Below, piece after piece: positions 6,890-58,290 of a DNA stretch of 64,000 nucleotides. The notes beneath the pieces were generated by a model. The model saw only the letters and a list, made by a program, of their open reading frames with translations. It ran no database searches and had not been told where the DNA came from. The DNA comes from Mobula birostris (taxonomy: Eukaryota), in the NCBI RefSeq assembly GCF_030028105.1, contig NC_092379.1, positions 21,119,309 through 21,183,308 of the forward strand. The letters run 5' to 3'. The translations under genes and the position numbers were made by a program. Each line of letters begins with the position of its first letter. Positions within the stretch are counted from its first letter, which is position 1.

Positions 6890-7741
6890 TCATTCAACAG
6901 CGGCGTCAGTGACAGCGGCAGGTAAAGCCTGAAGAAAATCCAGTGCAGCTTTTGGATCAAAAAAAGTACGAGGAGGAGAATTAGCAGGGAAAATTTTAAT
7001 TCTTGTCAGGTACCCCAGAGACGGAAAAAGTTTTTTATCATATGCTTGTTTCATTACCAGGGCAAATTTTGATCTTTGTTCCATTATCTCTCTTGGATCA
7101 TCTTCATAGAAGTGGAGCTCAGATTCCATAAATCTAAAAACTCTCTGTTTTCTTGCCTGTCGCATTATTTGATCTTTAAGTTTAAAGTGATGAAAGCAAA
7201 CCAGCACAGATCTTGGTTTACTAGAATCCTTCAATTTCGAGATAAACGCCCTATGTGCCCTTTCTATAGCAGGTGGCTTTGATAGAATGGTAGGAAATAA
7301 AGTGTGGAAAAGCTTACCAAAGTAAGCCGTTAGATCTCCTTCTTCAGCTCCTTCTTGCAGCCCAACAATTCTTATATTCCTTCGTCGAGACCTAGTTTCC
7401 AGGTCTATAATCTTATTTTGATATATTTCCAAATGATTTGTAGATTCAGACAACTTTTGCTTAGTTATCTTCAATTCCTCTTCGTGTGAAATAACTTGAG
7501 TTTCCAGGTCTTTAAGTTTTCCCAGAAATGACTTCATTTCATTACTATTCTTTTCCAGTTGGTCTTTAATTGATCCATTCTGATCCTTAATTGAATTCAG
7601 TGTCCGAACAATATCTTCAGCCCACGATGGCATTTCATCAGATCTTTCCTTTTGCACCTTTCCTTTCCCATTACCTATGTCACTAGGTTCAGGTAAATTC
7701 TCCCCACTTCTTGTAGACATAGACATATTGATCCCCGTCAA
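6890..7741 (-). CDS. L1 ORF1p (coiled coil + RRM + CTD), open frame of 283 aa
   Basis: LETRSRRRNIRIVGLQEGAE and IERAHR...PRSVLVCFHHFKLKDQI motifs typical of L1 ORF1. Confidence 0.88.
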   Translation of the reverse strand: MTGINMSMSTRSGENLPEPSDIGNGKGKVQKERSDEMPSWAEDIVRTLNSIKDQNGSIKDQLEKNSNEMKSFLGKLKDLETQVISHEEELKITKQKLSESTNHLEIYQNKIIDLETRSRRRNIRIVGLQEGAEEGDLTAYFGKLFHTLFPTILSKPPAIERAHRAFISKLKDSSKPRSVLVCFHHFKLKDQIMRQARKQRVFRFMESELHFYEDDPREIMEQRSKFALVMKQAYDKKLFPSLGYLTRIKIFPANSPPRTFFDPKAALDFLQALPAAVTDAAVE

Positions 7742-9129: not shown

Positions 9130-10081
9130 TGGGACCTTACACCTTTCATCTTTACTCCAAGCCTCTGGGCCTTGATAAGCAGAAGTTATGACCAGTACAA
9201 AAGAGACGGGTTACACCTGAATCCACAGGGGACAAATATCCTCGCAGACCGGTTTGCTAGAGCTGGTCAGAAGGGATTAAACAAATTTGGCAGGGGGATG
9301 GGAAATGAAGTGATAGGGTTGAGGATCAAATCATTGGTTGGCAAACAGTGTGTAGTGAGACTGCTAGCAAGAAGAAGCTGATGACTGGGTAAAATTGCAG
9401 TTATCGGGATGAGTTGCAATGTAAAAAGGGACAAAATTTTAAGATGTAATGAATACAGGACTGAAGGTGTTATATTTGAATGCACGCAGCATATGGAATA
9501 AGCTAGGTGAACTTGAAGCCCAGCGACATATTGGCATGTATGACATTGTGAGCATCTCTGAATCGTGGCTGAAAGAAGATTATAGCTGTGAGCTTAATGT
9601 CCAAGGATACACATTGTATCGAAAGGACAGGGAGGTAGGCAGAAGGCGTGGTGTGGCTGTGTTTGTAAAAAATTAAATTAAATCATCAGAAAGCAGTGTC
9701 ATAGGATCGGAAGGTGTAGAATCGTTCTGGGTAGAGCTAAGAATCTGCAAGAGTGAAAGACACTGATGGGACTTTTTACAGACCTGCAAACAGTATAACA
9801 AAGATGTGGTCTACATATTACAACGAAGGACAGAAAATGCATGTCAAAAGTGCAATGTTAAGATAGTCATCGTATGTTTCAATATGCAGGTTGATAGAGA
9901 CGGATTGCACCTGAACTTCAGGGGAACTGGATAGCTGTCTGCAAGATTTGCTGATGCTACTTGGAAGAGTTTAAACTAGTTCTGCAGGGGTGAGAACCCG
10001 AGCCCCAGGTCAGTTGGGGAAGGACCTGACCAGAAGTTAGATGTCAGGGAAGGTATTGAAAGTCACAATTGAAGTAACAGG
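9130..10081 (+). mobile_element. CR1-type LINE fragments (end of ORF1, start of endonuclease)
   Basis: YKRDGLHLN and LKVLYLNARSI...IVSISESWL motifs. Confidence 0.75.
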
Positions 10082-10321
10082 TGTTATGTTACTTCTGTTT
10101 AAACGTACCGTGGGTTAACAGTAAAGAATCATATTCTGGAAGTATTAGAAAACTTTTATTTACAGTAATAAACAAACACATCTTAACCCAGACACGTGCT
10201 GGAACATTCTGGCAATCCTGTGCATGCTGAGTGCTCTGTCCAATCATGTACTGGCACGTCATTGCATGTGATATTACCACACCTTCCTTTCCTTAAAAAG
10301 AAAAACACTTAACAATGTTAA

Positions 10322-10480
10322 TCAAAACACATCTATATAAGATAACTGAAACTCTGAAGTTGACTTTTTCTTAAAGCCTTTGCGATTCTTTCCTATCACC
10401 ACTCCCTCCTCTGTTTGGACCATGTATGATCTGGTCTGTGATAATGTGTTCCTTTTATCTTGTATCGTCACTTTGTATCC
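10322..10480 (-). pseudogene. Gypsy integrase C-terminal tail
   Basis: KVTIQDK...[18 protein letters not shown] resembles the Gypsy integrase end motif RSY.V.T..G...RNR. Confidence 0.65.
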
Positions 10481-10525
10481 TTGTCTTTCAGACAAACGTT
10501 TCCTTAGATCAGTCAATTCATGTTC
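10481..10525 (-). pseudogene. RABEP1: Captured RABEP1 fragment, part 2
   Basis: [15 protein letters not shown] versus RABEP1 EREIADLRRRLSEGQ, the direct continuation of part 1. Confidence 0.75.
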
Positions 10526-10660
10526 CACTTCCATTTGTAATGAAATACGAATCTTCTTTTCTTCATCTAATTCATTCATTAACTGTGTAATCTCTTTTTT
10601 ATGTTGAGACTTCATCATTTCAATAATACTCCTCAATTCCTTCACCTGTGCGTTCACTTC
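10526..10660 (-). pseudogene. SH3KBP1: Captured SH3KBP1 (CIN85) C-terminal coiled-coil fragment
   Basis: [45 protein letters not shown] versus recalled human CIN85 [45 protein letters not shown]. Confidence 0.85.
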
Positions 10661-10935
10661 TTATACTGTGCCCACTGTGAGTGTTCTTGCTCTAGACGGT
10701 GATGAAACTGAACCTCATATTCTCACAGTGTCTATTTCATTATTGCTTGCATTGAAGCAACCTCCTCCTGCCATTGCTTTTTCACATCATCAGTTGCCTC
10801 CCGTTTGGTCGTCTCAGACACTGCAGCTACTACTTTTATATTCTCCATGTCAGCATTTGCCTCCATGGCCTGGACCTGCAGTCGAGTTACATCACCTTCT
10901 GCCAACTGTAATGAAACATTCTGTTGCTTCAGCTC
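10660..10935 (-). pseudogene. RABEP1: Captured RABEP1 (Rabaptin-5) N-terminal coiled-coil fragment, part 1
   Basis: [90 protein letters not shown] aligns by eye to recalled human RABEP1 DLKRQNAVLQ...EMENIKAIATVSENTKQEAIDEVKRQWREEVASLQAVMKETVRDYEHQFHLRLEQERTQWAQYR. Confidence 0.88.
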
Positions 10936-11355
10936 TGTGTCACTATCCAAGACAAAAATTCTTTTCAGCAAACTAAGTCTTTCACAGGCAGATAAACCCA
11001 GAATTGACTGTACATTTTTTGGCATGGCCACAAATGAAAGCGTATGCACAATATTTTTGTGTGATACCTTTGCCACGCATGTTCCGTTAACTGGAATGTC
11101 TACACCTGAATACCCAGTCATTTTTATATTTGTCTGATGTAACTTCAGTCTTGGCTTTAAAGCATTAGACTCAGATTCTGCAAGAACATTTACTTGCAGT
11201 CCAGTATCAAGTTTTAACAGAATATTGTTTTGATTCACTTGCAACGGAATAGTCCAGTCATTCTTACTCTGTTTATTTTCACAAAGCACATCTATATAAA
11301 ATTCCTCACGTTCATCCTTAAGCACAGCATTTACTGGTTTCATTTTACTTTCCAT
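10936..11355 (-). pseudogene. Gypsy aspartic protease, fused in frame to the RABEP1 fragment
   Basis: WTIPLQVN...LKLDTGLQVNVL...ILGLSACERLSLLKR within ORF 10732-11355. Confidence 0.8.
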
Positions 11356-11369
11356 CTTTCTACTTTTAC

Positions 11370-11902
11370 AGCAGCATGAAACGTCACTGTCTCAGAAGCT
11401 TTGCAAATGCCAAAGCTTTTTCAAAATTTAAATTTTGCTCTCTCAACAGCCTTTTTCTCAGAGCATTATCTCGAATGCCACAAACGAGTCTATCTTTAAT
11501 GAGAGAGTCAATGAGCAATCCAAACTTGCATGTCTACTACGCTTTCTTAACTCAGTAACATACTGATCAATTGTTTCAGCGGCTCTCTGCACACGAGAAG
11601 AATTTATATCGCTCATACGTTAAATTACACTTAGGTATACAAAATGCTTCAAATCTGTCCATTATCGACCTTAAATTGAAATTATCTCCATCATCAAAGA
11701 CAAAATTATTATATACTTCTACTGTGTCATTCCCGATTACATAGAGCAAAAGCGCAGCTTTGATTTTTTTCAATTTTTCTTCATAATCGATCGCAGATAA
11801 ATAAAGTTCAAACTGTTGCTTGAATATCCTCCAATTCTCAGCTACATTGCCAGTCAGCTGAAGTTTTGGTAGGGGTGGTAAACCTTCCATTTTACCATTC
11901 AA
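11370..11902 (-). pseudogene. Gypsy gag, frameshifted, zinc knuckle apparently absent
   Basis: LQLTGNVAENWRIFKQQFELYL...LLLYVIG...ERYKFF, then LIKDRLVCGIRD..LREKRLL. Confidence 0.8.
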
Positions 11903-12249
11903 AGTTCAAACTTTTTTCTTCTATTTTTTTTTGATTATCTTCGATTCTCTATTCTCTCGTATTATTCTTCCAGAACTACTTCTGACACCATGTTATGTTA
12001 CTTCTGTTTAAACGCACCATGGATTAACAGTAAAGAATCATATTCTGGAAGAATTTGAGAAATTTTATTTACAGTATTAAGCAAACACGTCTTAACCCAG
12101 CCACGCGCTGGAACATTCTGGCAATCCCGCGCATGCTCAGTGCTCTGACCAGTCATGTACTGGCACATCATTGCATGTGATATCACCACAACAGGTATGA
12201 TAGGTCAGATAGTTTGGAGTGTGTATATTTTAAAGCTAAGAGTATTATG

Positions 12250-15110
12250 GGTAAGAGTGATAAGACCATAAGGTAAAGGAGCAGAAGTTGGCCATTTGGC
12301 TCATGAAGTCCGCTCTGCCATTCAATCATGGACTGATGCAATTCTTCCAGTCATCCCCACTCCCCTACCTTCTCCCCTTACCCTTTGATGCTTTGCCTAA
12401 TCAAGAATCTATCTATCTCTGCCTTAAATGCACCCATGACTTGGCCTCCACAGCTGCTTGTGACAACAAATTCCACAGATTTACCACACTCTGACTAAAG
12501 TAATTTCTCTGCATCTCTGTTCTAATGGACATCCTTCAATCTTGAAGTTGGGCCCTCTTGTCCTAGACTCCCCTACCATGGGAAATAACTTTGCCATATC
12601 TAATCTGTTGAGGCCTTTTAACATTCAGAATGTTTCTGTGAGATCCCCCCCATTCTACTGAACTCCAGGGAATACAGATCAAGAAATGGCAGACATTTCT
12701 CGTACGGTAACCCTTTCATTCCTGGAATCATTCCTGTGAATCTTCTCTGAACCCTCTCCAATGTCAGTATATCCTTTCTGAAATAAGAAACCCAAAACTG
12801 CATACAATACGCCAAGTGTGGTCTCATGAGTGCCTTATAGAGCCTCAACATTACATCCTTGCTCCCTATCCTATACCTCTAGAAATGAATGCCAACGTTG
12901 CATTCGCCTTCTTCACCACCGACTCAACCTGGAGGTTAACCTTTAGGTTATCCTACAAAAGGACTCCCAAGTTCCTTTGCACCCCTGCATTTTGAATTCT
13001 CTTTCCATCTAAATAATGATCTGCCCATTTATTTCTTCCACCAAAGTGCATAAGCAGACACTTTCCAACATTGTAATTCATTCGCCACTTCTTTTCCCAT
13101 TTCGCTAAACTATCTAAAACTCTATGCAGGCTCTGTTTCCTCAAGACTACCCACTCCTCTACCTATCTTTGTATAAACAGCAAATTTAGCCACAAATCCA
13201 TTAATCCCACAGTCCTAATCATTGACATAGAAACATAGAAAATAGGTGCAGGAGTAGGCCATTCAGCCCTTCGAGCCTGCACCGCCATTTATTATGATCA
13301 TGGCTGATCATCCAACTCAGAACCCTGCCCCAGCCTTCCCTCCATACCCACTGATCCCCATAGCCACAAGGGCCATATCTAACTCCCTCTTAAATATAGC
13401 CAATGAGCTGGCCTCAACTGTTTCCTGTGGCAGAGAATTCCACAGATTCACCACTCTCTGTGTGAAGAAGTTTTTCCTAATCTCGGTCCCAAAAGGCTTC
13501 CCCTTTATCCTTAAACTGTGACCCCTCGTTCTGGACTTCCCCAACATCAGGAACAATCTTCCTGCATCTGGCCTGTCCAATCCCTTTAGGATTTTATACG
13601 TTTCAATCAGATCTCCCCTCAATTTTCTAAATTCCAATGAGTACAAGCCCAGTTCATCCAGTCTTTCTTCATGTGAAAGTCTTGCCATCCCAGGAATAAA
13701 TCTGGTGAACCTTCTTCATACTCCCTCTATGGCAAGGATGTCTTTCCTCAGATTAGGGGACCAAAACTGCACACAATACTCCAGGTGTGGTCTCACCAAG
13801 GCCTTGTACAACTGCAGTAGTACCTCCCTGCTCCTGTACTCGAATCCTCTCGCTATAAATGCCAGCATACCATTTGCCTTTTTCACCGTCTGCTGTACCT
13901 GCGTGCCCACTTTCAATGACTGGTGTATAATGACACCCAGGTCTCGTTGCCCCTCCCCTTTTCCTAATCGGCCACCATTCAGATAATAATCTGTTTTCCT
14001 ATTTTTGCCACCAAAGTGGATAACTTCACATTTATCCACATTAAATTGCATCTGCCATGAATTTGCCCACTCACCCAACCTATCCAATTCACTCTGCATC
14101 CTCTTAGCATCCTCCTCATAGCTAACATGGCCACCCAGCTTCGTGTCATCCGCAAACTTGGAGATGCTGCATTTAATTCCCTCATCCAAGTCATTAATAT
14201 ATATTGTAAACAACTGGGGTCCCAGCACTGACCCTTGCGGTACCCCACTAGTCACCGCCTGCCATTCTGAAAAGGTCCCGTTTATTCCCACTCTTTGCTT
14301 CCTGTCTGCTAACCAATTCTCTATCCACATCAATACCTTACCCCCAATACCATGTGCTTTAAGTTTGCACACTAATCTCCTGTGTGGGACCTTGTCAAAA
14401 GCCTTTTGAAAATCCAAATATACCACATCCACTGGCTCTCCCCTATCCACTCTACTAGTTACATCCTCAAAAAATTCTATGAGATTCGTCAGACATGATT
14501 TTCCTTTCACAAATCCATGCTGACATACATCGTAAAAAGCAGCAGCCCCACACCGACCGCCGTGGAACTCCACTGGTGACCAGCAGCCAGCCAGAAAAGG
14601 ATCCCTTTATTCCCACTCTCTGTTTTCTGCTGATCAACCAAAGCTCCACCCATGCTGGTATCTTCCCTGTAACTCCACGGGCTCTCATCTTGCTTAGCAG
14701 CCTCATGTGTGCATCTTGTCAAAGGCCTTCTGAAAATTCAAGTACACCACACCTACTGGATCTCCTTTGTCTACCCTGCTTATAATTTCCTTAAAAATTG
14801 CAGTAGGTTAGTCAGGCAGGATTTTTTCCTTTCCGGAAACCGTGCTGGCTTTGGCCTATCTTGTCATGTGCCTCCAGGTACTCTGTAATCTCATCCCTAA
14901 CAATGGATTCCAACAACTTTCCAACCACTGATGTCAGGCTAACAGGTCTATAGTTTCCTTTCTGCTGCCTCCCACCCTTAAATAGTAGATAAACATTTGC
15001 AATTTTCCAGTCATCTGGTACAATGCCAAAATCTATCAAATCTTGAAAGATCGCTGTTAATGCCTCCACAGTCTCTACAGCTACTTCCTTCAGATCCAAA
15101 GGACACACAC
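12250..15110 (-). mobile_element. Stack of CR1-type LINE RT and 3' fragments
   Basis: ORF 13716-14573: QHGFVKGKSCLTNLIEFF, VYLDFQKAFD, GVPQGSVLGP, KFADDTKL. The 3' UTR is near 13230-13330. Confidence 0.88.
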
Positions 15111-15112
15111 AC

Positions 15113-15474
15113 CAGGTTCCCGCCGATCGTACCCTTTCACCCTGTGCGTCTATGGTCGGTTCCCGCGACCCGACTTCCAAACTCACACCAACTTGTGGGG
15201 GCACACCACTCTTCCAGGGTCTCGTTATCTTGTGATTTCGTGGTGTGTCCCGTGCCTTAGCGAACCTGTTCTTTTTATCCCCCTGCCAGGGTATCGCCTG
15301 TCCATTAAACTTCAAACAGTTCAGGTTCAAAGCAACCTGTCTGTCAATACTCCTAATTGTGTTTCTTTTCCGTTATCTCTCTCCTCTCTCATTAACATTT
15401 TGAACGCTTCTCCATTGTCTCCCTTATCTCTAACATCAGTATCAATCTTCTGATAACTTGGTTTGTCGTCACAC
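15113..15474 (-). mobile_element. Possible truncated LTR fragment inside CR1
   Basis: CpG-containing non-CR1 block that starts TGTGACG on the minus strand and has a TATA-like gataaaa. No partner LTR seen. Confidence 0.3.
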
Positions 15475-18689: not shown

Positions 18690-21600
18690 TGTGTGTGAGG
18701 CTGGTTTTCTGTGCTTGGAGTCAGATGTGAAAAGTCCTGGAGACTCCCAGCCTCCCGGAGAATCATATCTGCACCAGGTGCGTCGAGCTGCAGCTCCTTA
18801 TGGAACTGGAGATACAGCTCAATGACTTTCGTCTGGTCACAGAGAGTGAGGAGGTGATAGAGAGGAGGTATAGGCAGGTAGTCGCTCCGGGGCCTCGGGA
18901 GACAGATAAGTGGGTAACAGTCAGGAGAGGGAAGGGCAAGAAGCGGAGGCCAGAGAGTACCCCAATGGCTGTCCCCCTTAACAATATGTACTCCTATTTA
19001 AGTACTGTTGAGGTAGACAGCCTACCTGGGGGGAGCAACAGTGGTGGCACCTCTGGCACAGAGTCTGACCCTGTGGCTCAGAAGGGTAGGGAAAAGAAGA
19101 GGATGGCAGCAGTGACAGGGGTCTCTGTAGTTAGGCACTCATACAGGCAATTCTGTGGAAGCAGGTAAGAAACATGGATGGTAGCTTGCCTCCCAGGTGT
19201 CAGGGTCCAGGATGTTTCTGATCGGATCCACGATATCTTGAAGGGGGACTTAGAACAGCCAGAGGTCATGGTACATATTGGTACCAATGACATATGTAGG
19301 AAAAGGGAGGAGGTTCTGAAAACAGAATACATGGAATTGGGAAGGAAGTTGAAAAGCAGGACCTCAAAGGTAGTAATCTCGGGATTACTGCCTGTGCCAA
19401 GTGACAGTGAGTATAGGAATAGAATGAGGTGGAGGATAAATGTGTGGCTGAGAGGTTGGAGCAGGGGACAGGGATTCAGATTTCTGGATCATTGGGACCT
19501 CTTCTGAGGCAGGCGTGACCTGTACAAAAAGGACAGGTTGCACTTGAATCTAAGCGGGACCAATATCCCAGTGGGGAGGTTTGCAAAGGTTATTGGGAAC
19601 AGCTTAAACTAGAATTGCTGGGGGTGGGAACCGAACTGAAGTGATAGAGGAAAGGGAGGTTGGCTCACAAATAGAGAAAGCTTGGAGAAAGTACGAAATG
19701 GAGGATAGGCAGGTGATAGAGAAGGGACGCACTCAGACTGATGGCTTGAGATGCGTCTATTTTAATACGAGGAGTATTATGAATAAAGTGGATGAACTTA
19801 GAGTGTGGATCAGCACTTGGAGCTTTGATGTTGTGGCCATTATAGAGACTTGGATGGTGCAGGGGCAGGAATGGCTACTTCAAGTGCCAGACTTTAGATG
19901 TTTCAGAAAGGACAGAGAGGGAGGCAAAAGAGGTGGGGGCGTGGCACTGTTGATCAGAGATAGTGTCACGGCTGCAGAAAAGGAGGAAGTCATGGAGGAG
20001 TTGTCTACGGAGTCTCTGTGGGTGGAAGTTAGGAATAGGAAGGAGTCAATAACTCTACTGCGTGTTTTTTATAGACCACCCAATAGTAACGGACATCAAG
20101 GAGCAGATAGCGCGACAGATTCTGGAAAGGAGTAATAACAGGATTGGTGTGGCGGGAGAGTATAATTTCCCAAATATTGATTGGCATCTCCCTAGAGTGA
20201 GGGGTTTAGATGGGGTGGAGTTTGTTAGGTGTGTTCAGGAAGGTTTCTTGACACAATACGTAGATAAACCTACAAGAGGAGAGGCTGTACTTGATCTGGT
20301 ATTGGGAAATGAACCTGGTCAGGTGTCAGGTTTCTCAGTGGGAGAGCATTTTGAAGATAGTGATCGCAATTCTATCTCCTTTACCATAGCATTGGAGAGG
20401 GATAGGAACAGACAAGTTAGGGAAACTTTTAATTGGAGTCAGGGGAAATATATGGCTATCAGGCAGGAACTTGGAAGCATAAATTAGAAACAGATGTTCT
20501 GAGAGAAACGTACAGAAGAAATGTGGCAAATGTTCAGGGCATATTTGAGTAGGGTTCTAAGTACATACGTTCCAATGAGACATGGAAAGAATGGTAGGGT
20601 ATAAGATCCATGGTGTACAATGGTTGTTGTAAATCTAGTCAAGAAGAAAAGAAGAGCTTACGAAAGGTTCGGAAAACCAGGTAATGATAGGAATCTAGAA
20701 GATTATAAGGCTAGCACGAAGGAGCTTAAGAATGAAATTAGGAGAGCCAGAAGGGGCTATGAGAAGGCCTTGGCGGGCAGGATTAAGGAAAATCCCAAGG
20801 CATTCTACAAGTATGTGAAGAGCAAGAGGATAAGATGTGAGAGAATAGGACCAATCAAGTGTGACAGTGGAAAAGTGTGTATGGAACCGGAGGAAATAGC
20901 GGAGGTACTTAATGAATACTTTGCTTCAGTATTCACTAAGGAAAAGGATCTTAGAAATTGTAAGGATGACTTGCAGTGGACTGAAAAACTTGAGCATATA
21001 GATATTAAGGAAGAGGATGTGCTGGAGCTTTTGGAAGGCATCAAGTTGGGTAAGTCACCAGGACCAGACGGGATGTACGCCAGGCCACTGTGGGCAGTGA
21101 GGGAGGAGATTGCTGAGCCTCTGGCAATAATCTTTGCATAAGCAAAGAGGACAGAAGAGGTTCCAGAAGATTAGAGGGTTGTGGATGTTGTTCCTTTATT
21201 CAAGAAAGGGAGTAAGGATAGCCCAGAAAATTATAGGCCAGTGAGTCTTACATCAGTGGTCGGTAAGTTGTTAGAGAAGGTCCTGAGAGGCAGCATTTAT
21301 GAACAATTGGAGAGGCATAATATGACTAGGAATAGTCAGTGTGGCTTTGTCAAAGGCAGATTGTGCCTTACGAGCCTGATTGAATTTTTTAAGGATCTGA
21401 CTAAACTAGAGCCTTAGATGTAGTATATATGGATGTTAGCAAGGCATTTGATAAGGTACCCCATGCCAGGCTTATTGAAAAAGTAAGGAGGCATGGGATC
21501 CAAGGGGACATTGCTTTGTGGATCCAGAACTGGCTTGGCCACAGAAGGCAAAGAGTGGTTGTAGATGGGTCATATTCTGCACAGAGGCCAGTGACCAGTG

Positions 21601-22585
21601 GTGTGCCTCAGGGATCTGTTCTGGGACCCCTACTCTCTGGAATTTTTATAAATGACCTGGATGAGGAAGTGGAGGGATGGGTTAGTAAATCTGCTGATGA
21701 CACAAAGGTTGGGGGTGTTGTGCATAGTGTGAAGGGCTGTCAGAGGTTACAACAGGACATTGATAGGATGCAAAACTGGGATGCGAAGTGGCAGATGGAG
21801 TTCAACCCAGATAAGCGTAAGTTGGTTCATTTTGGTAGGTCAAATATGATGGCAGGATATAGCAGTAATGGAAAGACTCTTGGCAGTGTGGAGGATCAGA
21901 GGGATCTTGGGGTCCAGTCCATAGGACACTCAGAGCTGCTATGTAGTTTGACTCTGTGGTTAAGAAAGCATATTGTGCATTGTCCTTCAACAATTGTGGG
22001 ATTGAGTTTAAGAGCTGAGAGGTAATGTTTCAGCTATATAAGACCCTGGTCAGACCCCACTTGGAGTACTGTACTCAATTCTGTTGCCTCACTACAGGAA
22101 GGACGTGGAAACCATAGAAAGGGTACAGAGGAGATTTACAAGGATATTGCCTGGATTGGGGAGCATGCTTTATGAGAATAGGTTGAGTGAACTCAGTCTT
22201 TTCTCCTTGGAGCGACGGAGGATGAGAGGTGACCTGATAGAGGTGTTCAAGATAGTGAGAGGCATTGATTGTGTGGATCGTCAGAGGCTTTTCCCTAGGG
22301 CTGAAATGGCTAGCATGAGAGGGCATAGTTTTATAGTGCTTGAAGTAGGTCCAGAGGAGATGTCAGGGGTAAGTTTTTTACGCACTGAGTCATGAGTGCG
22401 TGGAATGGGCTGCTGGCGGTGGTGGTGGAGGCAAAAATGACAGGGTCTTTTAAGATAATCCTAGATGACAACATGGAGCTTAGAAAAACAGAGGGCTATG
22501 GGTAAACCCTAGGTAGTTCTAAGGTAGGGACATGTTTGGCACAGCTTTGGGGGCCAAAGGTCCTGTACTGTGCTGTAGGTTTTCT
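18690..22585 (+). mobile_element. Near full-length decayed CR1 LINE (zinc finger/SGNH esterase ORF1 plus EN-RT ORF2)
   Basis: ORF1: ICTRCVELQ, MVACLPGVRVQDV, VHIGTNDI. ORF2: YFNTRSI, NYRPVSLTS, DVSKAFDKVPH, ADDTKVGG. The 3' UTR follows. Many stops. Confidence 0.88.
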
Positions 22586-22589
22586 ATGT

Positions 22590-23510
22590 TACTATCAGGC
22601 AGGAACTTGGAAGCAGAAATTGGAAACAGATGTTCTCAGGGGAACATATTGAAGAAATGTGGCAAATATTCATGGGATATTTGCGTGGGATTCTGCATAG
22701 ATACATTTCAATGAGACAGGGAAAAGATTGTAGGGTACAGGAACTGTGGTGTACAAAGGCTGTTGTAAATCTTGCCAAGAAGAAAAGAAGAACTTAAAAA
22801 AAGGTTCAAAAAACTAGGTAATGTTAGAGATCTAGAAGACTGTGAGGTTAGCAGGAAGGAGCTTAAGAATGAAATTAGGAGAGCCAGAAGGCAGCATGAG
22901 AAGGCCTTGGCGGACAGGATTAAGGAAAACCCTAGGGCATTCTACAAGCATGTGAAGAGCAAGAGGATAAGACGTAAGAGAATAGGACCAATCAAGTGTG
23001 ACATTTGAAAAGTGTGTATGAAACTGGAGGAAATGGCAGAGGTACTTAATTAATACTTGGCTTCAGTATTCACTACGGAAAAGGATCTTGCTGATTATAG
23101 AGATGACTTGCAGTGGACTGAAAAACTTGAGAATGTAGAAATTAAGGAAGAGGATGTGCTGGAGCTTTTGGAAAGCATCAAGTTGGATAAGTCACTGGGA
23201 CCGGACAGGATGCACCCCAGGCTACTGTGGGAAGCAAGGGAGGAGATTGTTGAGCCTCTGGTGATGATCTTTGGATCATCAATGAGTACAAGAGAGGATC
23301 CAAAGGATTGGAGGGTTCTGGATGTTGTTCCTTTAATCAAGAAAGAGAGTAGGGATAGACCAGGAAATTATAGACCAGTGAGTCTTACTTCAGTGGTTTT
23401 TAAGTTGATGGAGAAGATTCTGAGAGGCAGGATTTATGAACATTTGGAGAGTCATAATATGACTAGGAATAGTCAGCATGGCTTTGTCAAAGGCAGGTCG
23501 TGCCTTAGGT
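22590..23510 (+). mobile_element. CR1 ORF2 fragment
   Basis: IKENPRAFYKHVKSKR, NYRPVSLTS, QHGFVKGRSC. Confidence 0.85.
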
Positions 23511-23514
23511 CCAG

Positions 23515-24450
23515 TCCCTATATACTTCCATCCCCCATTAGGAAGTTCTCAAAGTTCTCCACTTCTTTTTGGATTCCAGACCTAACCAGTTCCCCTCTAC
23601 CACCACTCTGGTCCATCTAGCCGAATTAGTCCTTACTCTTCATACTTTCTCCTTTGGCTCCTCCCACTTCCTCCAAACTAAAGGTGTAGCTATGGGCACC
23701 CGTATGGGTCCTAGCTATGCCTGCCTTTTTGTTGGCTTTGTGGAACAATCTATATTCCAAACCTATTCTGATATCTGTCCCCCACTTATCCTTCGCTACA
23801 TCGACGACTGCATTGGCGCTGCTTCCTGCACACATGCTGAGCTCGTTGACTTCATTAACTTTGCCTCCAACTTTCACCCTGCCCTCAAGTTTACCTTGTC
23901 CATTTCCAACAACTCCCTCCCCTTTCTAGATCTTTCTGTCTCTATCTTTGGAGACAGCTTATCTACTGATGTCTACTATAAGCCTACTGCCTCTCACAGT
24001 TATCTGGACTATTCCTCTTCTCACCCTGTCTCTTGCCATCCCCTTCTCGCAATTCCTCCGTCTCTGCCACATCTGCTCTCAGGATGAGGCTTTTCATTCC
24101 AGGACGAGGGAGATGTCCTCCTTTTTTAAAGGAAGGGGTTTCCCTTCCTCCACCATCAACTCTGCTCGCAAACGCATCTCCCTCATTTCACACACATCTG
24201 CTCTCACTCCAACCTCCCGCCACCCCACTAGGAATAGGTTCCCCTTGTCCTTACCTACCACCCCACCAGCCTCCGGGACCAACATATTATTCTCTGTAAC
24301 TTCCGCCACCTCCAATGGGATCCCACCACTAAGCACATCTTTCCGTCCCCAACTCTCTCTGCCTTCCGCAGGGATAACTTCCTACGCGATTCCCTTGTCC
24401 ATTCGTCTCCCCCATCCCTCCCCACCGATCCCCCTCCTGGCACTTATCCT
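23515..24450 (+). mobile_element. Penelope-like element RT fragment
   Basis: QTKGVAMGTRMGPSYACLF, LRYIDDCIG, LPFLDL, TDVYYKPT. Confidence 0.85.
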
Positions 24451-27419: not shown

Positions 27420-30400
27420 CCTATTACTATTTCCTCTGCCACAGGAAACAGTTGAGGCCAGTTCATTGGCTATATTTAAGAGGGAGTTAGATATGGCCCT
27501 TGTGGCTACGGGGATCGGGGGTATGGAGGGAAGGCTGGGGCAGGGTTCTGAGTTGGATGATCAGCCATGATCATAATAAATGGTGGTGCAGGCTCGAAGG
27601 GCTGAATGGCCTACTCCTGCACCTATTTTCTATGTTTCTGTGTTTCTATGAAACTCTGCAGGCTCAGCATGAGTTGAGAGTTAATGGGCAAGTACACAGA
27701 TGATACTCAGATCGGTGGAGTTGTGGATAATGAAGTATGTTTTCAAAGCTTGCAGAGAGATTTAGACCACTTAGAAGAGTGGGCTGAAAGATGGCAGATG
27801 AAGTTTAATGCTGATAAATGTAAGGTGCTACATTTTGGTAGGACTAATCAAAATAGAACATACATGGTAAATGGTAGGGCATTGAAGAATGCAATAGAAG
27901 AGAGGGATCTAGGAATAATAGTGCATAGTTCCCTGAAGGTGGAATCTCATGTGGATAGAGTGGTGAAGAAAGCTTTTGGTATGCTGGCCTTCATAAATCA
28001 CAGCATTGAGTATAGGAGTTGGGATGTAATGTTGAAATTGTACAAGGCATTGGTAAGGCTAAATTTGGAGTATCATGTACAGTTCTGGTCACCGAATTAT
28101 AAGAAGGATGTCAATAAAATTGAGAGAGTACAGAGGAGATTTACTAAAATGTTGCCTGGGTTTCATCTCCTAAGTTACAGAGAAAGGTTGAACAAGTTTG
28201 GTCTTTATTCTTTGGAGCGTAGAACATTGAGGGGGCACTTGATAGAGGTGTTTAAAATTATGAGGGGGATAGATGGAGTTGACGTGGATAGGCTTTTTCC
28301 ATTGAGAGTGGGGGAGATTCAAACAAGAGGACATGAGTTGAAAGTTAGGGGACAAACATTTAGGGTAACATGAGGGGGAACTTCTTTACTCAGAGTGGTA
28401 GCTGTGTGGAATGAGCTTCCAACACAAGTGGTTGAGGCAGGTTTGGTGTTGTCATTTAAGTTAAATTGGATAGATATATGGACAGGAAAGGAATGGAGGG
28501 TTATGGGCTGTGTGCAGGTCGGTGGGACTAGGTGAGAGTAAGAGTTTGGCACAGACTAGAAGGGCCGAGATGGCCTGTTTCCATGCTGTAATTGTAATAT
28601 GGTTATATGGTTAAATGATATGCTACACCTCGTGAGGGCAAATGCAAAGAGATAGTACACTTTTAAGGACAAGTTCTTTAGCAGTGCTGCCGAGCAGAGA
28701 GATCTTCGGACCCAAGTTCATAGCTCCTTGAAAGTGGCTACACAGGTCAATAAGATGGTTAACAAGGATTAAGGAATGCTTGCTGTTAATAGTTAAGGAA
28801 TTGAGTTCAAAAGTCAGGAGGTTATGTTGCAACTTTATAAAACTCAGGTCAGACCACACTGAAGTACTGCATACAGTTCTTGTTGCCCCACTATTGGAAG
28901 GATGTTGAGGCTTTGGGGAGGGTGTAGAAGAGGTTTGCCAGGATGCTGCCTGGTTTCAAGGGAACATGCAATCAGGAGAGGCCACATAAACTTGGGTTGT
29001 TTTCTCTGGAGCGTTGGAGGCTGAGGGGGATTTGATAAAGGTTTGCAAAATTATGAGAGACAAAGAGAGAGTGGAGAGAGTATCGCTTTCCCAGGGTTGA
29101 AATATGTATTAACAGAGGGAATGAATTTTAGGTGAAAGGGGGTCAGTTCAAGGGAATGTGAGAGGTTAATTTTATACTCAGAGACTGGAGGATGGCTGGA
29201 ATGTATTGCCTGGTGTGGTGGTAGAGGCAAATACATTAGAGATGTTTGGGTAGGCAAGTGGATGTAGGGAAGAAGAGGGGATATGGACATGGCGTAGGTG
29301 GTAGGGATTGGTGCTTGGGTGTTTTTGATTTGCTTTATAGCTGGTTCGGCACAACAGTGCAGGCAAAATGGCCTGTGCTGTAGTAAATTATTTTGGTGCC
29401 ACATCCTAGGGGAAGGAATTTGTAGAATGTCTACAAGTTTTTTCTTAGAGCAGGTGGTGAATGAGCCCACTCGACGATTAGCTATTCTGGATTGGATGTT
29501 GTGTAATCAACCGGAATCGAGTGGAGAGTTTAAGGTAAGGGAACGCTTGGGAGCCAGTGATCATAATATGATGTAATTCACCCTGCAATTAATTTGAGAA
29601 GGAGAATCAAAAGTCAGACAGATTAGTATTACAGTGGAGTAAAGGGAATTTCAAAGGCATGAGAGGAGCTGGCCAAAAAATTGATTGGAAGGGGAAACCA
29701 GCAGGGATGATGACAGAGCAGAGATGGCTGGAGATTTGGGGAGTAATTTGAAAGGCACAACATGGATGCATCCAAAAGAAGAAATGTTCTCAAGGCAGTA
29801 TGCCACCAGGTAGCATCTAATGAAAAGAGTAAACAAACAATGATTTGGGTCAAGACCCTTCATCAGTCTGAAACTTTGACTCTTTTTCATAGATGCTGCC
29901 AGGCCTGCTGAGCTCCTCCAGCACTGTGTGTGTTACTAAAGAACCCATGGTACTACAGGAGAGATACTAGCATGGATAGAACATCCTCTGGTAGGAGGCA
30001 AAGAGTAGGAATGAAGGCAGACTTTATTAGCAGCTAGTGCCTCGTGGTGTTCCACAAGGGTCTGTGTTGGAACCGCAACTTATCACGTAAAATGTCAATG
30101 ATTTGGATTACAAAATTGATGGCTTTTAGGGCCAAGTTTGTGGATGATACTTAGTGAGGTGGAAGGGCAGATAGAGTTGAGAAAGCAGAGAGGCTACAGA
30201 AACAGATTTGGAGAATAGACAAAGTAGTGGCAGATATGATAAAGTGTTGGGAAGTGAATGGTTATACAGTTTGGGAGAAGAAATAAAAGCATAGGCTACT
30301 TCCTAAATGGAGATAAAATTCAAAAATCTGAGGTAAAAAGGGCCTTGGGAGTCCTTGTGCAGGATTCCATTAAGGTTAATTTGCAAGTTGAGTCTGTGGT

Positions 30401-35086: not shown

Positions 35087-38000
35087 TCTCATGGTCCCTT
35101 CTGGCAATCCCCCACCAGCTATTTACTTCAGGAATTGGGCCTCAATCCCGTTGTTTAATTTCCAGTCATTCCCAGGTTCCACTAACTACGCACACCTGCT
35201 TTCCATCAGAAAATGCAGAATAAAGACACTGTAATCACAAAAAGGAGCTGCCAGTTCGTTGGTCGATTCCAGTGTAAGTAACCTTGTTTCATGGTTCTTA
35301 GGACTGTCAGTTCTAAGTCTAGCATCACTCCTGGATTCTCTCCAAACCCAAGACTTCGGGTAAAGACAATCCTGGAAACTGATTCCACCCTCACTACAGC
35401 AATAACGCCTCCTGACTCTGCCCCCCCCACCCCCGCCCGTGTTCTGCACTTGGACCCGTCCACTGCCACGCCCGTGCAACAGAACGAACTGGCCATAATG
35501 AACCCAGTGGACACGGATCCCGTACAACAGGCCCTCGCCAACCAGGGCTACCTACTGGGCGCCCACGACTAACTATTTAGGGAGGTCACGGAAAACCTTC
35601 AGACGTTACCCACGAATGTTCGGAAGGTCAGTGAGCAGGTGGACCGAGTTTCCGCTTCCCTTTGTCCGTCCCCTCCAAGAACCCCGACTACCCAAACCGC
35701 ACCGCTTGGGATGGCGTCGCCCCTGGGATCAGCAACACATTTCCCTCGAGAGCCATATGTACCGGAGCCCGAACCCTACGCTGGGGAGCTAGGGAGGTGC
35801 TGGGCCTTCCTGTTACAATGCTCTCTGGTCTTTGAGCTACAGCCACGTAACTACACTTCAGATAAATCCAAGATTGTGTACATCATGGGGCTGTTACGAG
35901 GGGATGCCTTGGCCTAGGCAACCGCGATATGGGATAACCGACCAGAGGTTTGTTCCTCCTTCCCCTCCTTTGTCGCTGAAATGAGGAAGGTCTTCGAACA
36001 ACCCATTTGCAGTAAGGACGCCGCTAAACGCTTACTGACTCTTTATCAGGGTCCGCGAAGCGTAGCGAGGTATTCCATCGAGTTCCGAACCTTAGCCGCA
36101 GACTCAGGGTGGAATGATGAGGCCTTAGGGGAGGTATTTCGACAGAGTCTCTCGGACAAGATAAAAGGATGAACTGGCAGCAAGGGACGGCCCAGACTGT
36201 CAGGGTTCTCTGATCTCGCTAGCCACTAGATTAGATAATCAACTTCAAGAGCGGCTGAGAGAAAGAACCAGTCGTCCCGCTCCTTGGGGAAGCCCACGGT
36301 CCACCTTATCAGTCTCAGCCAGCCTCCCTTCCCCAGCCGCTCCAAGTGTGGCTCCTGCTCCAACAGTCCCCACCACCCTGGGGGAGGAACCGATGCAGCT
36401 GGGATGGAACTGCCTCTCCCCGGCCAAATGACTTCGGAGGTGGAGAGCTGGGGACTGTTACTATTGTGGCCAGCCAGGGCATTTCCAGGATACCTGCCCT
36501 CAGCGGCCAAAGAGGGAGGGCTCACCAGTGAAAAAGGGGGCCCTGGTGAGCCGGACAATACTCCCTTCTGCCCCCCAGACTCGGATGCAGATCCCAGCTA
36601 CCGTGAATTACCAACGACAGTCCCTGTCCCTATCTGCTTTGGTGAATTCCGGTGCCGAGGGCAATCTGCTGGACGAAGACATAGCCTCCCTGGCTGGAAT
36701 ACCTCGCGAGCTGCTAACTACCCCCATGGAGGACCGGGCCCTGGACGGAAAACTGCTGGCTTGGGTGACCCACTGTACGCCGCCCCTGACCTTGATCCTA
36801 TCTGGCAACCATCAGGAGGAGGTACGATTCAGTCTCATTCATTCACCTCAAGCCCCGGTAGTTCTAGGCTATCCATGGCTGACCCAACACAATCCCCACA
36901 TCATCTGGTCTAGCAGGAAGATAGCCAAATGGAGCCAGTCTTGCCACGCCAACTGTCTGCGGTCAGCCCCATCTCCCAGGGAAGTTACCATGACCCTGCC
37001 TGTTCCGGAACCCCTCGATTTGTCCCGCGTCCCCACAGAATACCATGACCTGGGACAGGTGTTCAGTAAACAACGGGCCCTTTCCCTGCCTCTGCACCGC
37101 CCATATGATTGTGCCATCGACCTTTTCCCTGGGGCCTCGCTACCCACCAGTTGCCTTTTTAACCTATCCCGACCGGAGAGAGAGGCCATGGAGAAATACA
37201 TTAGCGAGTCCCTGGCGGCGGGCATCATCAGGCCTTCATCCTCCCCGGTAGGCGCCAGTTTCTTCTTTGTAGAAAAGAAGGACGGGTTGCTTTGTCCTTG
37301 TATTGATTAGAGGCCTAAACAGTATAACAGTTAAGAATAAGTACCCTCTACCCCTCATTAGTTCGTCTTTTGAACCACTGCATGGAGCCACCATCTTCTC
37401 AAAGCTGGACCTTCGTAACACCTACCATCTAGTCAGGATGAGGGAGGGGGACGAGTGGAAGACGGCCTTTAATACACCTCTGGCCACTTCGAATATTGGG
37501 TCATGCCGTTTGGCCTCACCAATGCTCCCACTGTTTTTAAGCCCTAATCAATGACATACTGAGGGACTTTATTAATCGGTCGTATTCGTTTACCTCGATG
37601 ATATCCTGATATTTTCTAGCATGTCCCAAGAACGCGTCCACCATGTCGGTCAAGTCCTCCAGAGACTGTGGGAAAATCAATTATTTGTGACGGTGAAGAA
37701 ATGTGAGTTCCATGTTCCTACGATCAGCTTCTTGAGTTATATCATTGAGAGCGGGCAGGTAAGAGCAGACCCCGGGAAGATCCAGGCAATGGAAGAATAG
37801 CCTAGGCCCACGACCCGCAAACAACTTCAACGATTCCTGGGGTTTGCCAATTTATCAGAGACTACAGTCGAGTGGCGGCCCCCTTAACCGGCTTACCTCG
37901 CCTACTACCCCCTTCCGTTGGGTCTCCGAAGCTGACTCGGCGTTCACCGACCTGAAGAGGCGTTTCACCACCGCTCCCACCCTGGTCCATCCGGACCCAG

Positions 38001-40224
38001 CCCATCAATTCGTTGTTGAGGTGGATGCCTCTGATTGCAGTCCTATCCCAACGATCAAGATCAGACGAAAAGCTTCACTCCTGCGCCTTCTATTCTCTCC
38101 GACTGTCCCCCGCCGAGTGGAATTATGACGTGGGGAATTGGGAACTCCTGGCGGTCAAACTAGCATTGGAAGAATGGAGGCACTGACTGGAGGGGGCAGA
38201 ACAACCGTTTGTGCTGTGGACTGAACATAAAAACCTGGGGTATATTCAGACCGCCAAACGTTTGAACCCCCGCCAGGCCCGTTGGGCATTAGTTTTTTGG
38301 ACGGTTCAAGTTTTCCCTCAATACTGTCCAGGGTCCAAGAACGAGAAGCCAGACGCGCTCTCACGCCAATACGACTCCAAGGAGGACACTTCTTGCCCAG
38401 GGACTATCCTCCCAGTATCCTGCGTGGTTGCCACCCTCACTTGGGAGATCGAGTCTAAAGTAAAGGAAGCCCAGCGGGACGACCCCGACCCCAGCAATGG
38501 ACCCAGCAATCGCCTGTATGTGCCCGTTTCCATCAGGTCTCAGGTTCTCCAATGGGGGCGCACATCTCAGTTTGCCTGCCACCCCGGGAGTGATCGGACC
38601 CTAGCGCTCCTGAAAAAAACACTTTTGGTGGCCGCCCATGCGGGCGGATACCCGTTCCTATGTCTCGGCCCGTTCCATCTGTGCCCGGGGAAAAGCCTCT
38701 CATTGGCCACCTGCGGATTTACTTCGTCCTCTATCTGTCCCTGGTCACACATTGCCCTCGACTTCGTCACCGGTCTACTACCCCCTTCACATGGAAACAT
38801 CACCGTACTCATTGTGGTTGACCAGTTCTCCAAGGCGGTGCACTTTGCAACCCTCCCTAAACTCCCTTCTTCTCAAGAAACCACAGATCTCCTCCTCCTC
38901 CACGTCTTCCGCCTCCATGGAATCCCTGCGGACATTGTTTCCGATCGAGGTCCCCAGTTCATCTCGCAGGTATGGAAGGCCTTCTACCAGGCCTTAGGTG
39001 TATCGGTCAGCCTGTCATCCGGCTTCTACCACTGGACAAACGGGCAGACGGAACGGGTCAACCAGGTCCTGGAGGTGACGCTACGCTGTGTAACGGCAAA
39101 CATCCTGTCGATCTGGATCAATCACCTCCCATGGGTTGAGTACGTCCACAACTCTCTGGTAAGCTCTGCCATTGGGAGGTCTCCATTAGAGTGCTCCCTA
39201 AGGTATCAACCCCTGCTGTTCCCTGCACAAGAATAGGAGATTGCTGTACTGTCCGTTCAGGACCATGTTGACTGGTGTCTTAAGGTTTGGGAGGAGACAC
39301 GCATGGCCCTACTCAGATCAGCAAATCGCAATAAGAAAACGGCGGACCGACACTGGACTCCAGCGCCTGAGTACCAACTGGGGCAGATGGTGTGGCTTTC
39401 GTCCAAGGACATCCCGCTCAAGAATGAGCCTAGGAAACTCACCCCTCGCCTCCTGGGACCATTCAAGGTCGAAAGTGTTATCAATCCCGCAGCGATCCAC
39501 CTAAAATTGCCAAGATCTATGTGCATCCACCCAACTTTTCATGATTCCCAGTTAAAGCCAGTTTCCGTCATCCCCTTGTGTCCCCCGGCTGAGACTCCCC
39601 CACCTCCCCATATTGTCGACAACCATCCTGCATACACTGTCCAATGACTACTGGATGTGCGCTGTCGGGGCAGGGGTTTCCAATACCTGGTAGACTAGGG
39701 AGGGTACGGTCCAGAAAAGCGTTCCTGGGTCCCCCGCTCCTTCATCCGAGACCCTTCCCTCATCCAGGACTTTCATCGGGACTATCCAGACAGGCCTGGA
39801 GGATCACCTGGAGGCTCCCGTTGAGGGAAGGGTACTGTCATAGTCGCTTCTGGCAATCCCCCACCTTGCTAGTTACCTCAGGAATTGGGCATCAATCCCC
39901 TTGTTTAATTTCCAATCATTCCCAGGTTCCACTAACTACACACACCTGCTTTCCATCAGAAAATACAGGATAACGATCCTGTGATCACAACAAGGAGCTG
40001 CCAGTTTGTTGGTCGACTCCGGTGCGAGTAACCTCATTTCGTGGTTCTTAGGACTGTCCGTTCTAAGTCTAGTATCGCTCCTGGGTTCTCTCCAAACCCA
40101 AGACTCCGGGTAAAGACTCTCCTGGATACCGATTCCATGCTCGCTATGGCAATAATGCCTCCTGACTCTGTCTCCGTGCCCGTGTTCTGCACTTGGGTTC
40201 ATCCACCACCACGCCCATGCAACA
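35087..40224 (+). mobile_element. Tf1/sushi-group chromoviral Gypsy LTR retrotransposon, full length but decayed
   Basis: LTRs at 35087-35481 and 39836-40224. PPT gagggaagggtac. Gag (PEPYAGELGRCWAFLLQC), protease (ALVNSGAEGN), RT ([16 protein letters not shown]), integrase ([13 protein letters not shown]) and chromodomain (YTVQ*LLDVR...QYLVD). Confidence 0.92.
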
Positions 40225-57074: not shown

Positions 57075-58290
57075 TCTGCTCTCAGGATGAGGCTTTTCAT
57101 TCTAGGACAAGGGAGATGTCCTCCTTTTTTAAAGAAAGGGGCTTCCCTTCCTCCACTATCAACTCTGCTCTTAAACGCATCTCCCCCATTTCACGTACAT
57201 CTGCTCTTACTCCATCCTCCTGCCACCCCACTAGGAATAGGGTTCCCCTGGTCGTCACCTACCACCCCACCAGCCTCCGGGTCCAACATATTATTCTCCG
57301 TAACTTCCACCACCTCCAATGGGATCCCACCACTAAGCACGTCTTTCTCTCCCCACCCTCTGTGCTTTCCGCAGGGATCACGCCCTACGCGACTCCCTTG
57401 TCCTTCGTCCCCCCCATCCCTCCCCACTGATCTCCCTCCTGGCACTTATCCGTGTAAGCGGAACAAGTGTTACACATGCCCTTACACTTCCTCCCTTACC
57501 ACCATTCAGGGCCCCAAACAGTCCTTCCAGGTGAGGCGACACTTCACCTGTGAGTCGGCTGGGGTGATATACTGCGTCCGGTGCCCCCGATGTGGCCTTT
57601 TATGTATTGGCGAGACCCGACGCAGACTGGGAGACTGCTTTGCTGAACACCTACACTCTGTCCGCTAGAGAAAGCAGGATCTCCCAGCGGCCACACATTT
57701 TAATTCCACATCCCATTCCCATTCTGACATGTCTATCCACGGCCTCTTCTACTGTAAAGATGAAGCCACACTCAGGTTGGAGGAACAACACCTTATATTC
57801 CGTCTTGGTAGCCTCCAACCTGATGGCATGAACATCGACTTCTCTAACTTCCGCTAATGCCCCACCTCCCCCTCGTACCCCATCTGTTACTTATTTTTAT
57901 ACACACATTCTTTCTCTCACTCTCCTTTTTCTCCCTCTGTCCCTCTGAATATACCCTTGCCCATGCTCTGGGTTCCCCCCCCCTCCATTTTCTTTCTTCC
58001 CGGACCTCCTGTCCCATGATCCTCTTGTATCCCTTTTGCCAATCACCTGTCCAGCTCTTGGCTCCATCCCTCCCCCTCCTGTCTTCTCCTATCATTTTGG
58101 ATCTCCCCCTCCCCCTCCAACTTTCAAATCTCTTACTCACTCTTCCTTCAGTTAGTCCTGACGAAGGGTCTAGGCCTGAAACTTCGACTGCACCTCTTCC
58201 TAGAGATGCTGCCTGGCCTGCTGCGTTCACCAGCAACTTTGGTGTGTGTTCCTTGAATTTCCAGCATCTGCAGAATTCCTGTTGTTTGCG
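57075..58290 (+). mobile_element. 5'-truncated Penelope-like element with GIY-YIG endonuclease and 3' hammerhead motif
   Basis: GVIYCVRCPRCGLLCIGETRRRLGDCFAEH. CTGACGA...GAAAC at 58158-58182. 10-bp duplication cctacaatca/cctataatca (57065-57074, 58291-58300) inside a CR1. Confidence 0.85.

Follow-up and report, generated by a model that had tools for sequence, protein, structure and literature searches.

A RABEP1 cargo with a nested SH3KBP1 coiled coil in an old non-autonomous Ty3/Gypsy-type stingray element, probably built by template switching

The minus strand of a 64,000-nucleotide stretch of Mobula birostris DNA, analysed as a whole and called the window here, contains a short coding segment related to SH3KBP1 (CIN85) that lies inside a fragment of RABEP1. 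These are two unrelated host genes. How did a piece of one come to be inserted so neatly into a piece of the other, and from which template was it copied?

The two pieces are part of an LTR element of 2109 bp (10082-12190, minus strand of the window), which encloses the whole cargo. Its features are listed in the direction in which the element reads.

12191-12195, minus strand: target-site duplication (TSD) on the 5' side, CCTGT, by direct reading; repeated immediately beyond the 3' LTR
11991-12190, minus strand: 5' LTR, 200 nt, TG...CA ends, 90.5% identical to the 3' LTR
11965-11990, minus strand: PBS-like stretch that begins TGG right after the 5' LTR, a candidate PBS from reading of the sequence alone
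11356-11902, minus strand: gag remnant, a broken gene entered as one part, by polyprotein homology
10933-11355, minus strand: aspartic protease, DTG present, open, by Pfam and relatives
10661-10935, minus strand: 5' part of the RABEP1 (Rabaptin) cargo, broken, entered as one part, by PF03528
10523-10660, minus strand: SH3KBP1/CIN85 coiled-coil piece, 46 codons, open, by PDB 5abs and 2n64
10478-10522, minus strand: 3' part of the RABEP1 cargo, 15-16 codons, by alignment to P0158
10322-10477, minus strand: C-terminal tail of the pol integrase including the stop, by a motif near the C-terminus of P0073 and P0015
10282-10294, minus strand: polypurine tract (PPT) AAGGAAAGGAAGG, adjoining the 3' LTR, by direct reading
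10082-10281, minus strand: 3' LTR, 200 nt, by comparison of the LTR pair
10077-10081, minus strand: TSD on the 3' side, CCTGT, by direct reading

The LTRs have the ends TGTGG...AACA and differ at 19 positions (K2P 0.102), and the 5 bp TSD is found on either flank of the pair. The nearest full-length relatives found are P0015, P0073 and P0117, unnamed polyproteins from environmental assemblies. Their pol order, assigned with Pfam, is PR-RT-RNaseH-IN, which is of the Ty3/Gypsy type. The gag, protease (PR) and integrase tail of the window element align to them in the same order. BLASTP places the gag remnant at 46-48% identity to residues 1-102 of these gag-pol polyproteins; a Pfam search of the gag reading frame matched no family. 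The protease frame matches Asp_protease_2 and gag-asp_proteas and aligns to P0015 residues 272-403. The tail carries the motif ...RSY.V.TE.G...NR..., which corresponds to residues 1216-1236 of the 1297 residues of P0073, and the last ~50 codons 5' of the PPT are this integrase C-terminal motif region. The cargo is bounded by the end of the protease (P0015 residue 403) and the integrase tail (around residue 1216 of P0073), and it occupies the place of RT, RNase H and the integrase core, which are absent from the window copy. Approximately 0.48 kb of host-derived, intron-less coding sequence replaces some 800 codons of the pol of autonomous relatives. The element thus shares with the Ty3/Gypsy elements (Metaviridae) of aquatic animals a homologous gag N-terminus, protease and integrase tail and a matching layout of LTR, TSD and PPT, but it has only 36-48% identity to P0015, P0073 and P0117 and lacks the three enzymatic parts that these possess. 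From homology and gene order we assign it as a Ty3/Gypsy-type LTR retrotransposon and, since it has no RT, RNase H or integrase core, take it to be a non-autonomous derivative.

The window copy is decayed. Its gag remnant has at least one frame change and five to six stops in the homologous frames, and its zinc-knuckle region is shorter than that of the sibling protein P0008. Compared with the open sibling P0009, the cargo is interrupted by two stops and one frame change, whereas the protease, the SH3KBP1 piece and the integrase tail are open. Because the LTRs are 10% diverged and both gag and cargo are broken, we regard this copy as an old, inactive fossil. A blastn search of the window against itself revealed neither a second copy of the element nor a solo LTR. 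Among the matches to the protease frame is P0016 (1571 aa), in which 15 separate stretches match residues ~100-148 of the frame; the protein seems to consist of tandem repeats of the C-terminal part of the protease.

The larger part of the cargo is RABEP1. The upstream 72 residues match positions 43-114 of the Rabaptin family PF03528 with E = 1.6e-22 and 80.4 bits, and the next 21 residues match positions 119-139 with E = 2e-6 and 27.2 bits, the Pfam cut-off for this family being 26.7 bits. The 5' part has 81-82% amino acid identity to RABEP1 of Narcine bancroftii. In the 3' part 11 of 16 residues are identical to the same protein (P0158 residues 156/157-171). In P0158 numbering K152/E153 is the last position of the upstream part and E156/R157 the first of the downstream part, and only two to three codons of RABEP1 are lost at the site of the insert. 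It had been claimed from the letters of the window that the SH3KBP1 piece sits inside the RABEP1 fragment with almost no loss of RABEP1 sequence, and this is correct. The same nested topology holds at the level of the whole locus, with an SH3KBP1 piece in a RABEP1 cargo in an LTR element. No match was returned from a PDB search with the PR plus RABEP1 reading frame; the solved Rabaptin-5 structures presumably cover other regions of the protein.

The inserted piece is encoded by minus-strand positions 10523-10660, and comprises 46 residues, all of them aligned with the coiled coil at the C-terminus of SH3KBP1. The initial annotation counted 45 codons matching the CIN85 C-terminus; with one codon more, that identification is confirmed by the PDB matches to 5abs (E = 2.2e-12) and 2n64 (E = 3.6e-12). 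Identity over the piece is 77% to SH3KBP1 of Polyodon and 70% to one transcript contig. Apart from one transcript fragment, all matches from a search of a large protein collection were SH3KBP1 proteins, with identities of 54-70%. CD2AP was absent from the results of the protein searches with the SH3KBP1 pieces, and every named match was SH3KBP1, which assigns the piece to this gene in preference to CD2AP. Within the length window of the search no chondrichthyan SH3KBP1 protein was returned. The piece is in frame with the 3' part of RABEP1, which in turn is in frame with the integrase tail.

Were these pieces copied from RNA? The RABEP1 piece is 87% identical in nucleotide sequence over 201 nt to a genomic exon in L002, a genomic contig from a sequencing run, where the exon begins with AGGAGTTGAAG after ...CAG and ends with ATAATGAAAG before GTATGA. 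The window sequence runs past the end of this exon (...AAAG/GTATGA) into coding sequence of the next exon, with no intron between. Two introns interrupt the coiled coil in the SH3KBP1 gene of Channa striata (L004), each of them within the region homologous to the 46 codons, and the window piece spans both positions without introns. Both comparators come from species other than the host, and in genes of this sort introns usually keep their positions. Since the cargo pieces lack introns that the genomic comparators have, we consider both to be derived from spliced RNA. The proposal that both are mRNA-derived thus holds at one RABEP1 and two SH3KBP1 intron positions. The cargo start (window 10930-10940, minus strand; L002:1031-1040) lies only 2-5 nt inside the L002 exon. 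The proximity may be accidental, or it may point to where the captured RNA had its 5' end.

An exhaustive representative search, with 1224 matches, identified three close sibling proteins in the collections searched. P0008 is Hypanus sabinus XP_059819315.1, a single-exon model that is 84% identical. P0009 is Hemitrygon akajei XP_072880776.1, named 'rab GTPase-binding effector protein 1-like' by NCBI. P0010, also from Hemitrygon akajei (XP_072897951.1), is encoded by a single 966-nt exon. We know these siblings as proteins and gene models, and the LTRs and TSD have been read in the window copy. The window protease aligns to those of P0008 and P0010 without gaps and with 84% identity, over 111 residues in the case of P0010.

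The window copy, P0008 and P0009 share the arrangement PR-RABEP1-SH3KBP1 with the same PR/RABEP1 and RABEP1/SH3KBP1 junctions, at 82-84% amino acid identity. In P0009 part of the protease, RABEP1, SH3KBP1, RABEP1 and the integrase tail follow one another in a single open frame of 258 aa. As the same nested chimera is present in copies from two named stingray species, we judge that it arose once and was then multiplied as a non-autonomous element; at least two dasyatid species carry the chimera.

P0010 is different. It has no RABEP1, and its order is protease, ~66 aa of the RT N-terminus (compare P0015), ~122 aa of SH3KBP1 and integrase tail. The SH3KBP1 part consists of linker plus coiled coil, and SH3KBP1 proteins of Polyodon, Denticeps and Zootoca cover 98-99% of it. 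The description of the cargo as coiled-coil segments only is accurate for the window element, but not for this sibling, which includes ~70 residues of the non-coiled linker. Within the shared region 44 of the 46 residues of the window piece are identical to P0010. The two types have no breakpoint in common. P0010 keeps RT that has no counterpart in the window type, and the window type keeps a longer integrase tail; for these reasons we take neither to be a simple descendant of the other. A Thr in the E-I-x-Q-L column is found in all three element copies and in 0 of 34 host SH3KBP1 sequences, a set that does not contain the stingray's own gene. The common Thr is a hint that the donor may have been a sibling element, but it could simply be the residue of the ray gene.

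The ends of the insert bear on how it was acquired. The sequences gaagtgaac (10652-10660, minus strand) and gaagtggaac (10522-10531, minus strand) had been put forward as microhomology between the two junctions. The letters are there. The longest exact word common to the two ends is 6 nt, a match obtained in 2% of random window pairs within the cargo and in 5% of codon shuffles, and the repeat exceeds chance only weakly. Yet it is not a homology between donor and acceptor. The SH3KBP1 piece begins with the codons of one motif (E-V-K/N) and finishes with those of the other (E-V-E), and in P0010 both motifs are interior to continuous SH3KBP1, with further SH3KBP1 on their outer sides. At the site of insertion RABEP1 reads A-M-E-R. 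The repeat is therefore a property of the donor. On the same grounds a target-site duplication generated by the insert is ruled out.

Overlaps of another kind can be seen when the parental proteins are compared. At the RABEP1/SH3KBP1 5' junction a Glu codon is common to RABEP1 (K-E) and SH3KBP1 (E-E-V). At the SH3KBP1/RABEP1 3' junction protein comparison together with the window DNA gives a common (M/V)-E pair, corresponding to TGGA, and probably to TGGAA since Met has a single codon and the window has GAA. Protein comparison also gives one Glu codon common to both sides of the PR/RABEP1 junction, through which the 5' part of RABEP1 is joined in frame to the protease. We infer short donor-acceptor overlaps of about 3-5 nt, as read from protein sequences and the window DNA rather than from parental nucleotides. 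Short overlaps at both inner junctions would be compatible with the protein sequences.

Taking these observations together, we find it reasonably probable that this is an old non-autonomous Ty3/Gypsy-type stingray element whose RABEP1 cargo, with its SH3KBP1 excursion, was built by template switching, and that the SH3KBP1 donor was probably a sibling RNA. The cargo would have been assembled by template switches of RT within the virus-like particle, in a case of LTR-mediated retroposition where copy choice took place at short overlaps. Two switches during minus-strand synthesis would have formed the excursion that brought in the SH3KBP1 piece. At the first of these RT would leave the RABEP1 template at the (M/V)-E overlap, approximately TGGA[A], and then copy ~135 nt of an RNA bearing SH3KBP1. 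At the second it would regain RABEP1 at the Glu-codon overlap, 6-9 nt upstream of the point of departure. A return so close to the departure point would be expected because, as in retroviruses generally, RNase H degrades the part of the first template that has been copied, and the nearest intact acceptor would lie just upstream. Paired switches that leave and re-enter RABEP1 within 6-9 nt are the simplest route to the observed structure.

What was the second template? In our reading it would be the RNA of a sibling element of the P0010 type, already bearing a longer SH3KBP1 fragment. A co-packaged sibling RNA is more probably the donor than a host mRNA, because the same region of the same gene is present in P0010, a member of the same family, and an independent double capture is a priori very unlikely. 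Moreover RNAs of family members are those expected to be co-packaged. Transfer from the P0010 type to the window type is argued here from parsimony, since two derivatives of a single family contain the same region of the gene.

The initial annotation had instead proposed a second capture, from host mRNA, by a double template switch. Much of this stands, namely the nesting, the spliced origin and the two switches as the simplest route; it is the host mRNA as source that P0010 speaks against. We regard direct capture of host SH3KBP1 mRNA by a RABEP1-bearing element in a later cycle as a minority possibility, but one to be taken seriously. It fits the nested topology and the spliced origin, such capture has been documented for host mRNAs (PMC5131818), and the window type has no breakpoint in common with P0010. 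Against this, one family would have to take the same region of one host gene twice independently, and the repeat that had been offered in its support is internal to SH3KBP1, with no homology to RABEP1. The RABEP1-only intermediate state that had been suggested was not found among the annotated and predicted proteins of the 1224 representative matches or of a 90%-cluster search; the SH3KBP1-only P0010 was found instead.

The excursion might also have taken place in DNA, by capture of SH3KBP1 cDNA or sibling-element cDNA during end-joining repair of a break in a genomic RABEP1 element, which would then have become the master copy. Short overlaps and the loss of few bases agree with this too, and an intron-less piece requires a cDNA source either way. 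We nevertheless think it improbable. It adds a step, in that the repaired copy must remain transcribed and packaged, while template switching by the element itself accounts for all four cargo junctions in one process, and neither filler nor flanking foreign sequence is seen at the junctions. It is scarcely credible that the sequence is not cargo at all, but a RABEP1-like paralogue or chimeric gene of the host lying beside retroelement debris. The name given to P0009 and its open frame of 258 aa could suggest this. However, within a single LTR pair with TSD the cargo is preceded by gag and PR and followed by integrase tail, PPT and LTR; PR and RABEP1 are fused in frame in all three copies; and the window copy is broken.

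The cargo may possibly have been more than a passenger. A Gag-PR protein extended by a long helix made of two oligomerizing coiled coils could conceivably have been selected, although we consider this quite unlikely. Four junctions can be scored, i.e. PR/RABEP1, RABEP1/SH3KBP1, SH3KBP1/RABEP1 and RABEP1/integrase tail. P0009 keeps the frame at every one of them and the window copy at three, and for the three junctions that were not used to find the copies the chance expectation is roughly 4%. A single-sequence AlphaFold model of P0009 has helices at residues 137-216 and 219-257, extending across both inner junctions; it is a low-confidence model (mean pLDDT 55) and was used solely for the prediction that the cargo is helical. 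If there was selection, the fusion might aid entry of the product or RNA of the defective element into helper particles, or it might act against the helper. A further possibility is co-option of a single copy by the host. That all three known copies are decayed argues against a present function.

How does this element compare with known systems? Acutely transforming retroviruses capture genes as gag-onc fusions. There too, host mRNA becomes joined in frame to the gag/pro side by recombination during reverse transcription, and the product is defective and dependent on a helper. The stingray element differs in that it has no env and shows no sign of infectivity or of an effect on cells, the host sequence it carries is made up of short coiled-coil fragments from endocytic adaptors, and the window copy is a decayed germ-line fossil. 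Copy-choice recombination occurs between co-packaged retroelement RNAs, and like the transfer proposed here it moves a resident piece between family members in one round of reverse transcription. Here, however, the switches would be between non-homologous cargo at very short overlaps and not between aligned homologous genomes. Bs1 of maize (Elrouby and Bureau) is reportedly a precedent in plants for LTR-mediated retroposition.

The closest parallel is LTR-mediated retroposition, in which host mRNA is copied into LTR elements by template switches that depend on microsimilarity (Tan et al. 2016, Genome Res, PMC5131818). Microsimilarity was present at 86% of the junctions, with a median of 6 bp; some cases involved three or more switches and two parental genes, and the chimeras underwent secondary retroposition as non-autonomous elements (PMC5131818). 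The stingray case resembles those chimeras in many respects. Inside the LTR pair, part of the element ORF has given way to intron-less host coding sequence, which covers each host gene incompletely and draws on two of them. More than two switches are involved, the chimera has been recopied as a non-autonomous element, and the overlaps deduced at the junctions, which here are not read from parental nucleotides, are short. It differs in its batoid (cartilaginous fish) host, in the nesting of one gene piece in the other with a return within 6-9 nt, and in having a sibling whose piece of that second gene is longer, an indication that cargo was transferred between elements.

The mechanism is thus one that is already described (PMC5131818), and no new mechanism is opened by this locus. 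What is new is the host group, the neat nested geometry and the evidence suggesting transfer of cargo between elements. The locus offers a clean vertebrate case, from cartilaginous fish, in which an LTR retrotransposon has brought exons from two unrelated genes together in one frame and spread the chimera in the genome. A template excursion that returns within a few bases of its departure is an instructive detail, and the sibling with the longer piece suggests that cargo can pass between members of a family. There is also a practical consequence, in that the name of the stingray 'RABEP1-like' gene model is an annotation artefact of transposon cargo.

A different irregularity is found in another RABEP1 model. 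In P0020 (Narcine bancroftii XP_069741131.1, RABEP1 'isoform X9') residues ~590-703 resemble the N-terminus of a LINE RT, and this gene model probably extends into a repeat within an intron.

The surroundings of the LTR element are rich in repeats. LINE-type (non-LTR) RT fragments lie at 12600-15330 (minus strand), 20620-24100 (plus strand), 27680-28380 (plus strand) and 57840-61090 (minus strand), and an RVT_1 match at 13719-14573 has E = 3e-25. At 6890-7741 on the minus strand is an open frame of 283 aa with a coiled-coil N-terminal half and a weak Tropomyosin-type match below threshold, which has the look of a LINE ORF1. A second, unrelated region resembling an LTR element is located at ~36280-39240 on the plus strand; it is more G+C-rich (G+C 51-54%) and contains protease-like and integrase-core frames (rve, E = 1e-11). 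Near the start of the window, at 345-947 on the plus strand, an open frame includes an immunoglobulin C1-set domain (PF07654, E = 1e-17, residues 65-149). The window thus seems to lie in or beside a cartilaginous-fish gene of the Ig superfamily, of immunoglobulin, TCR or MHC type.
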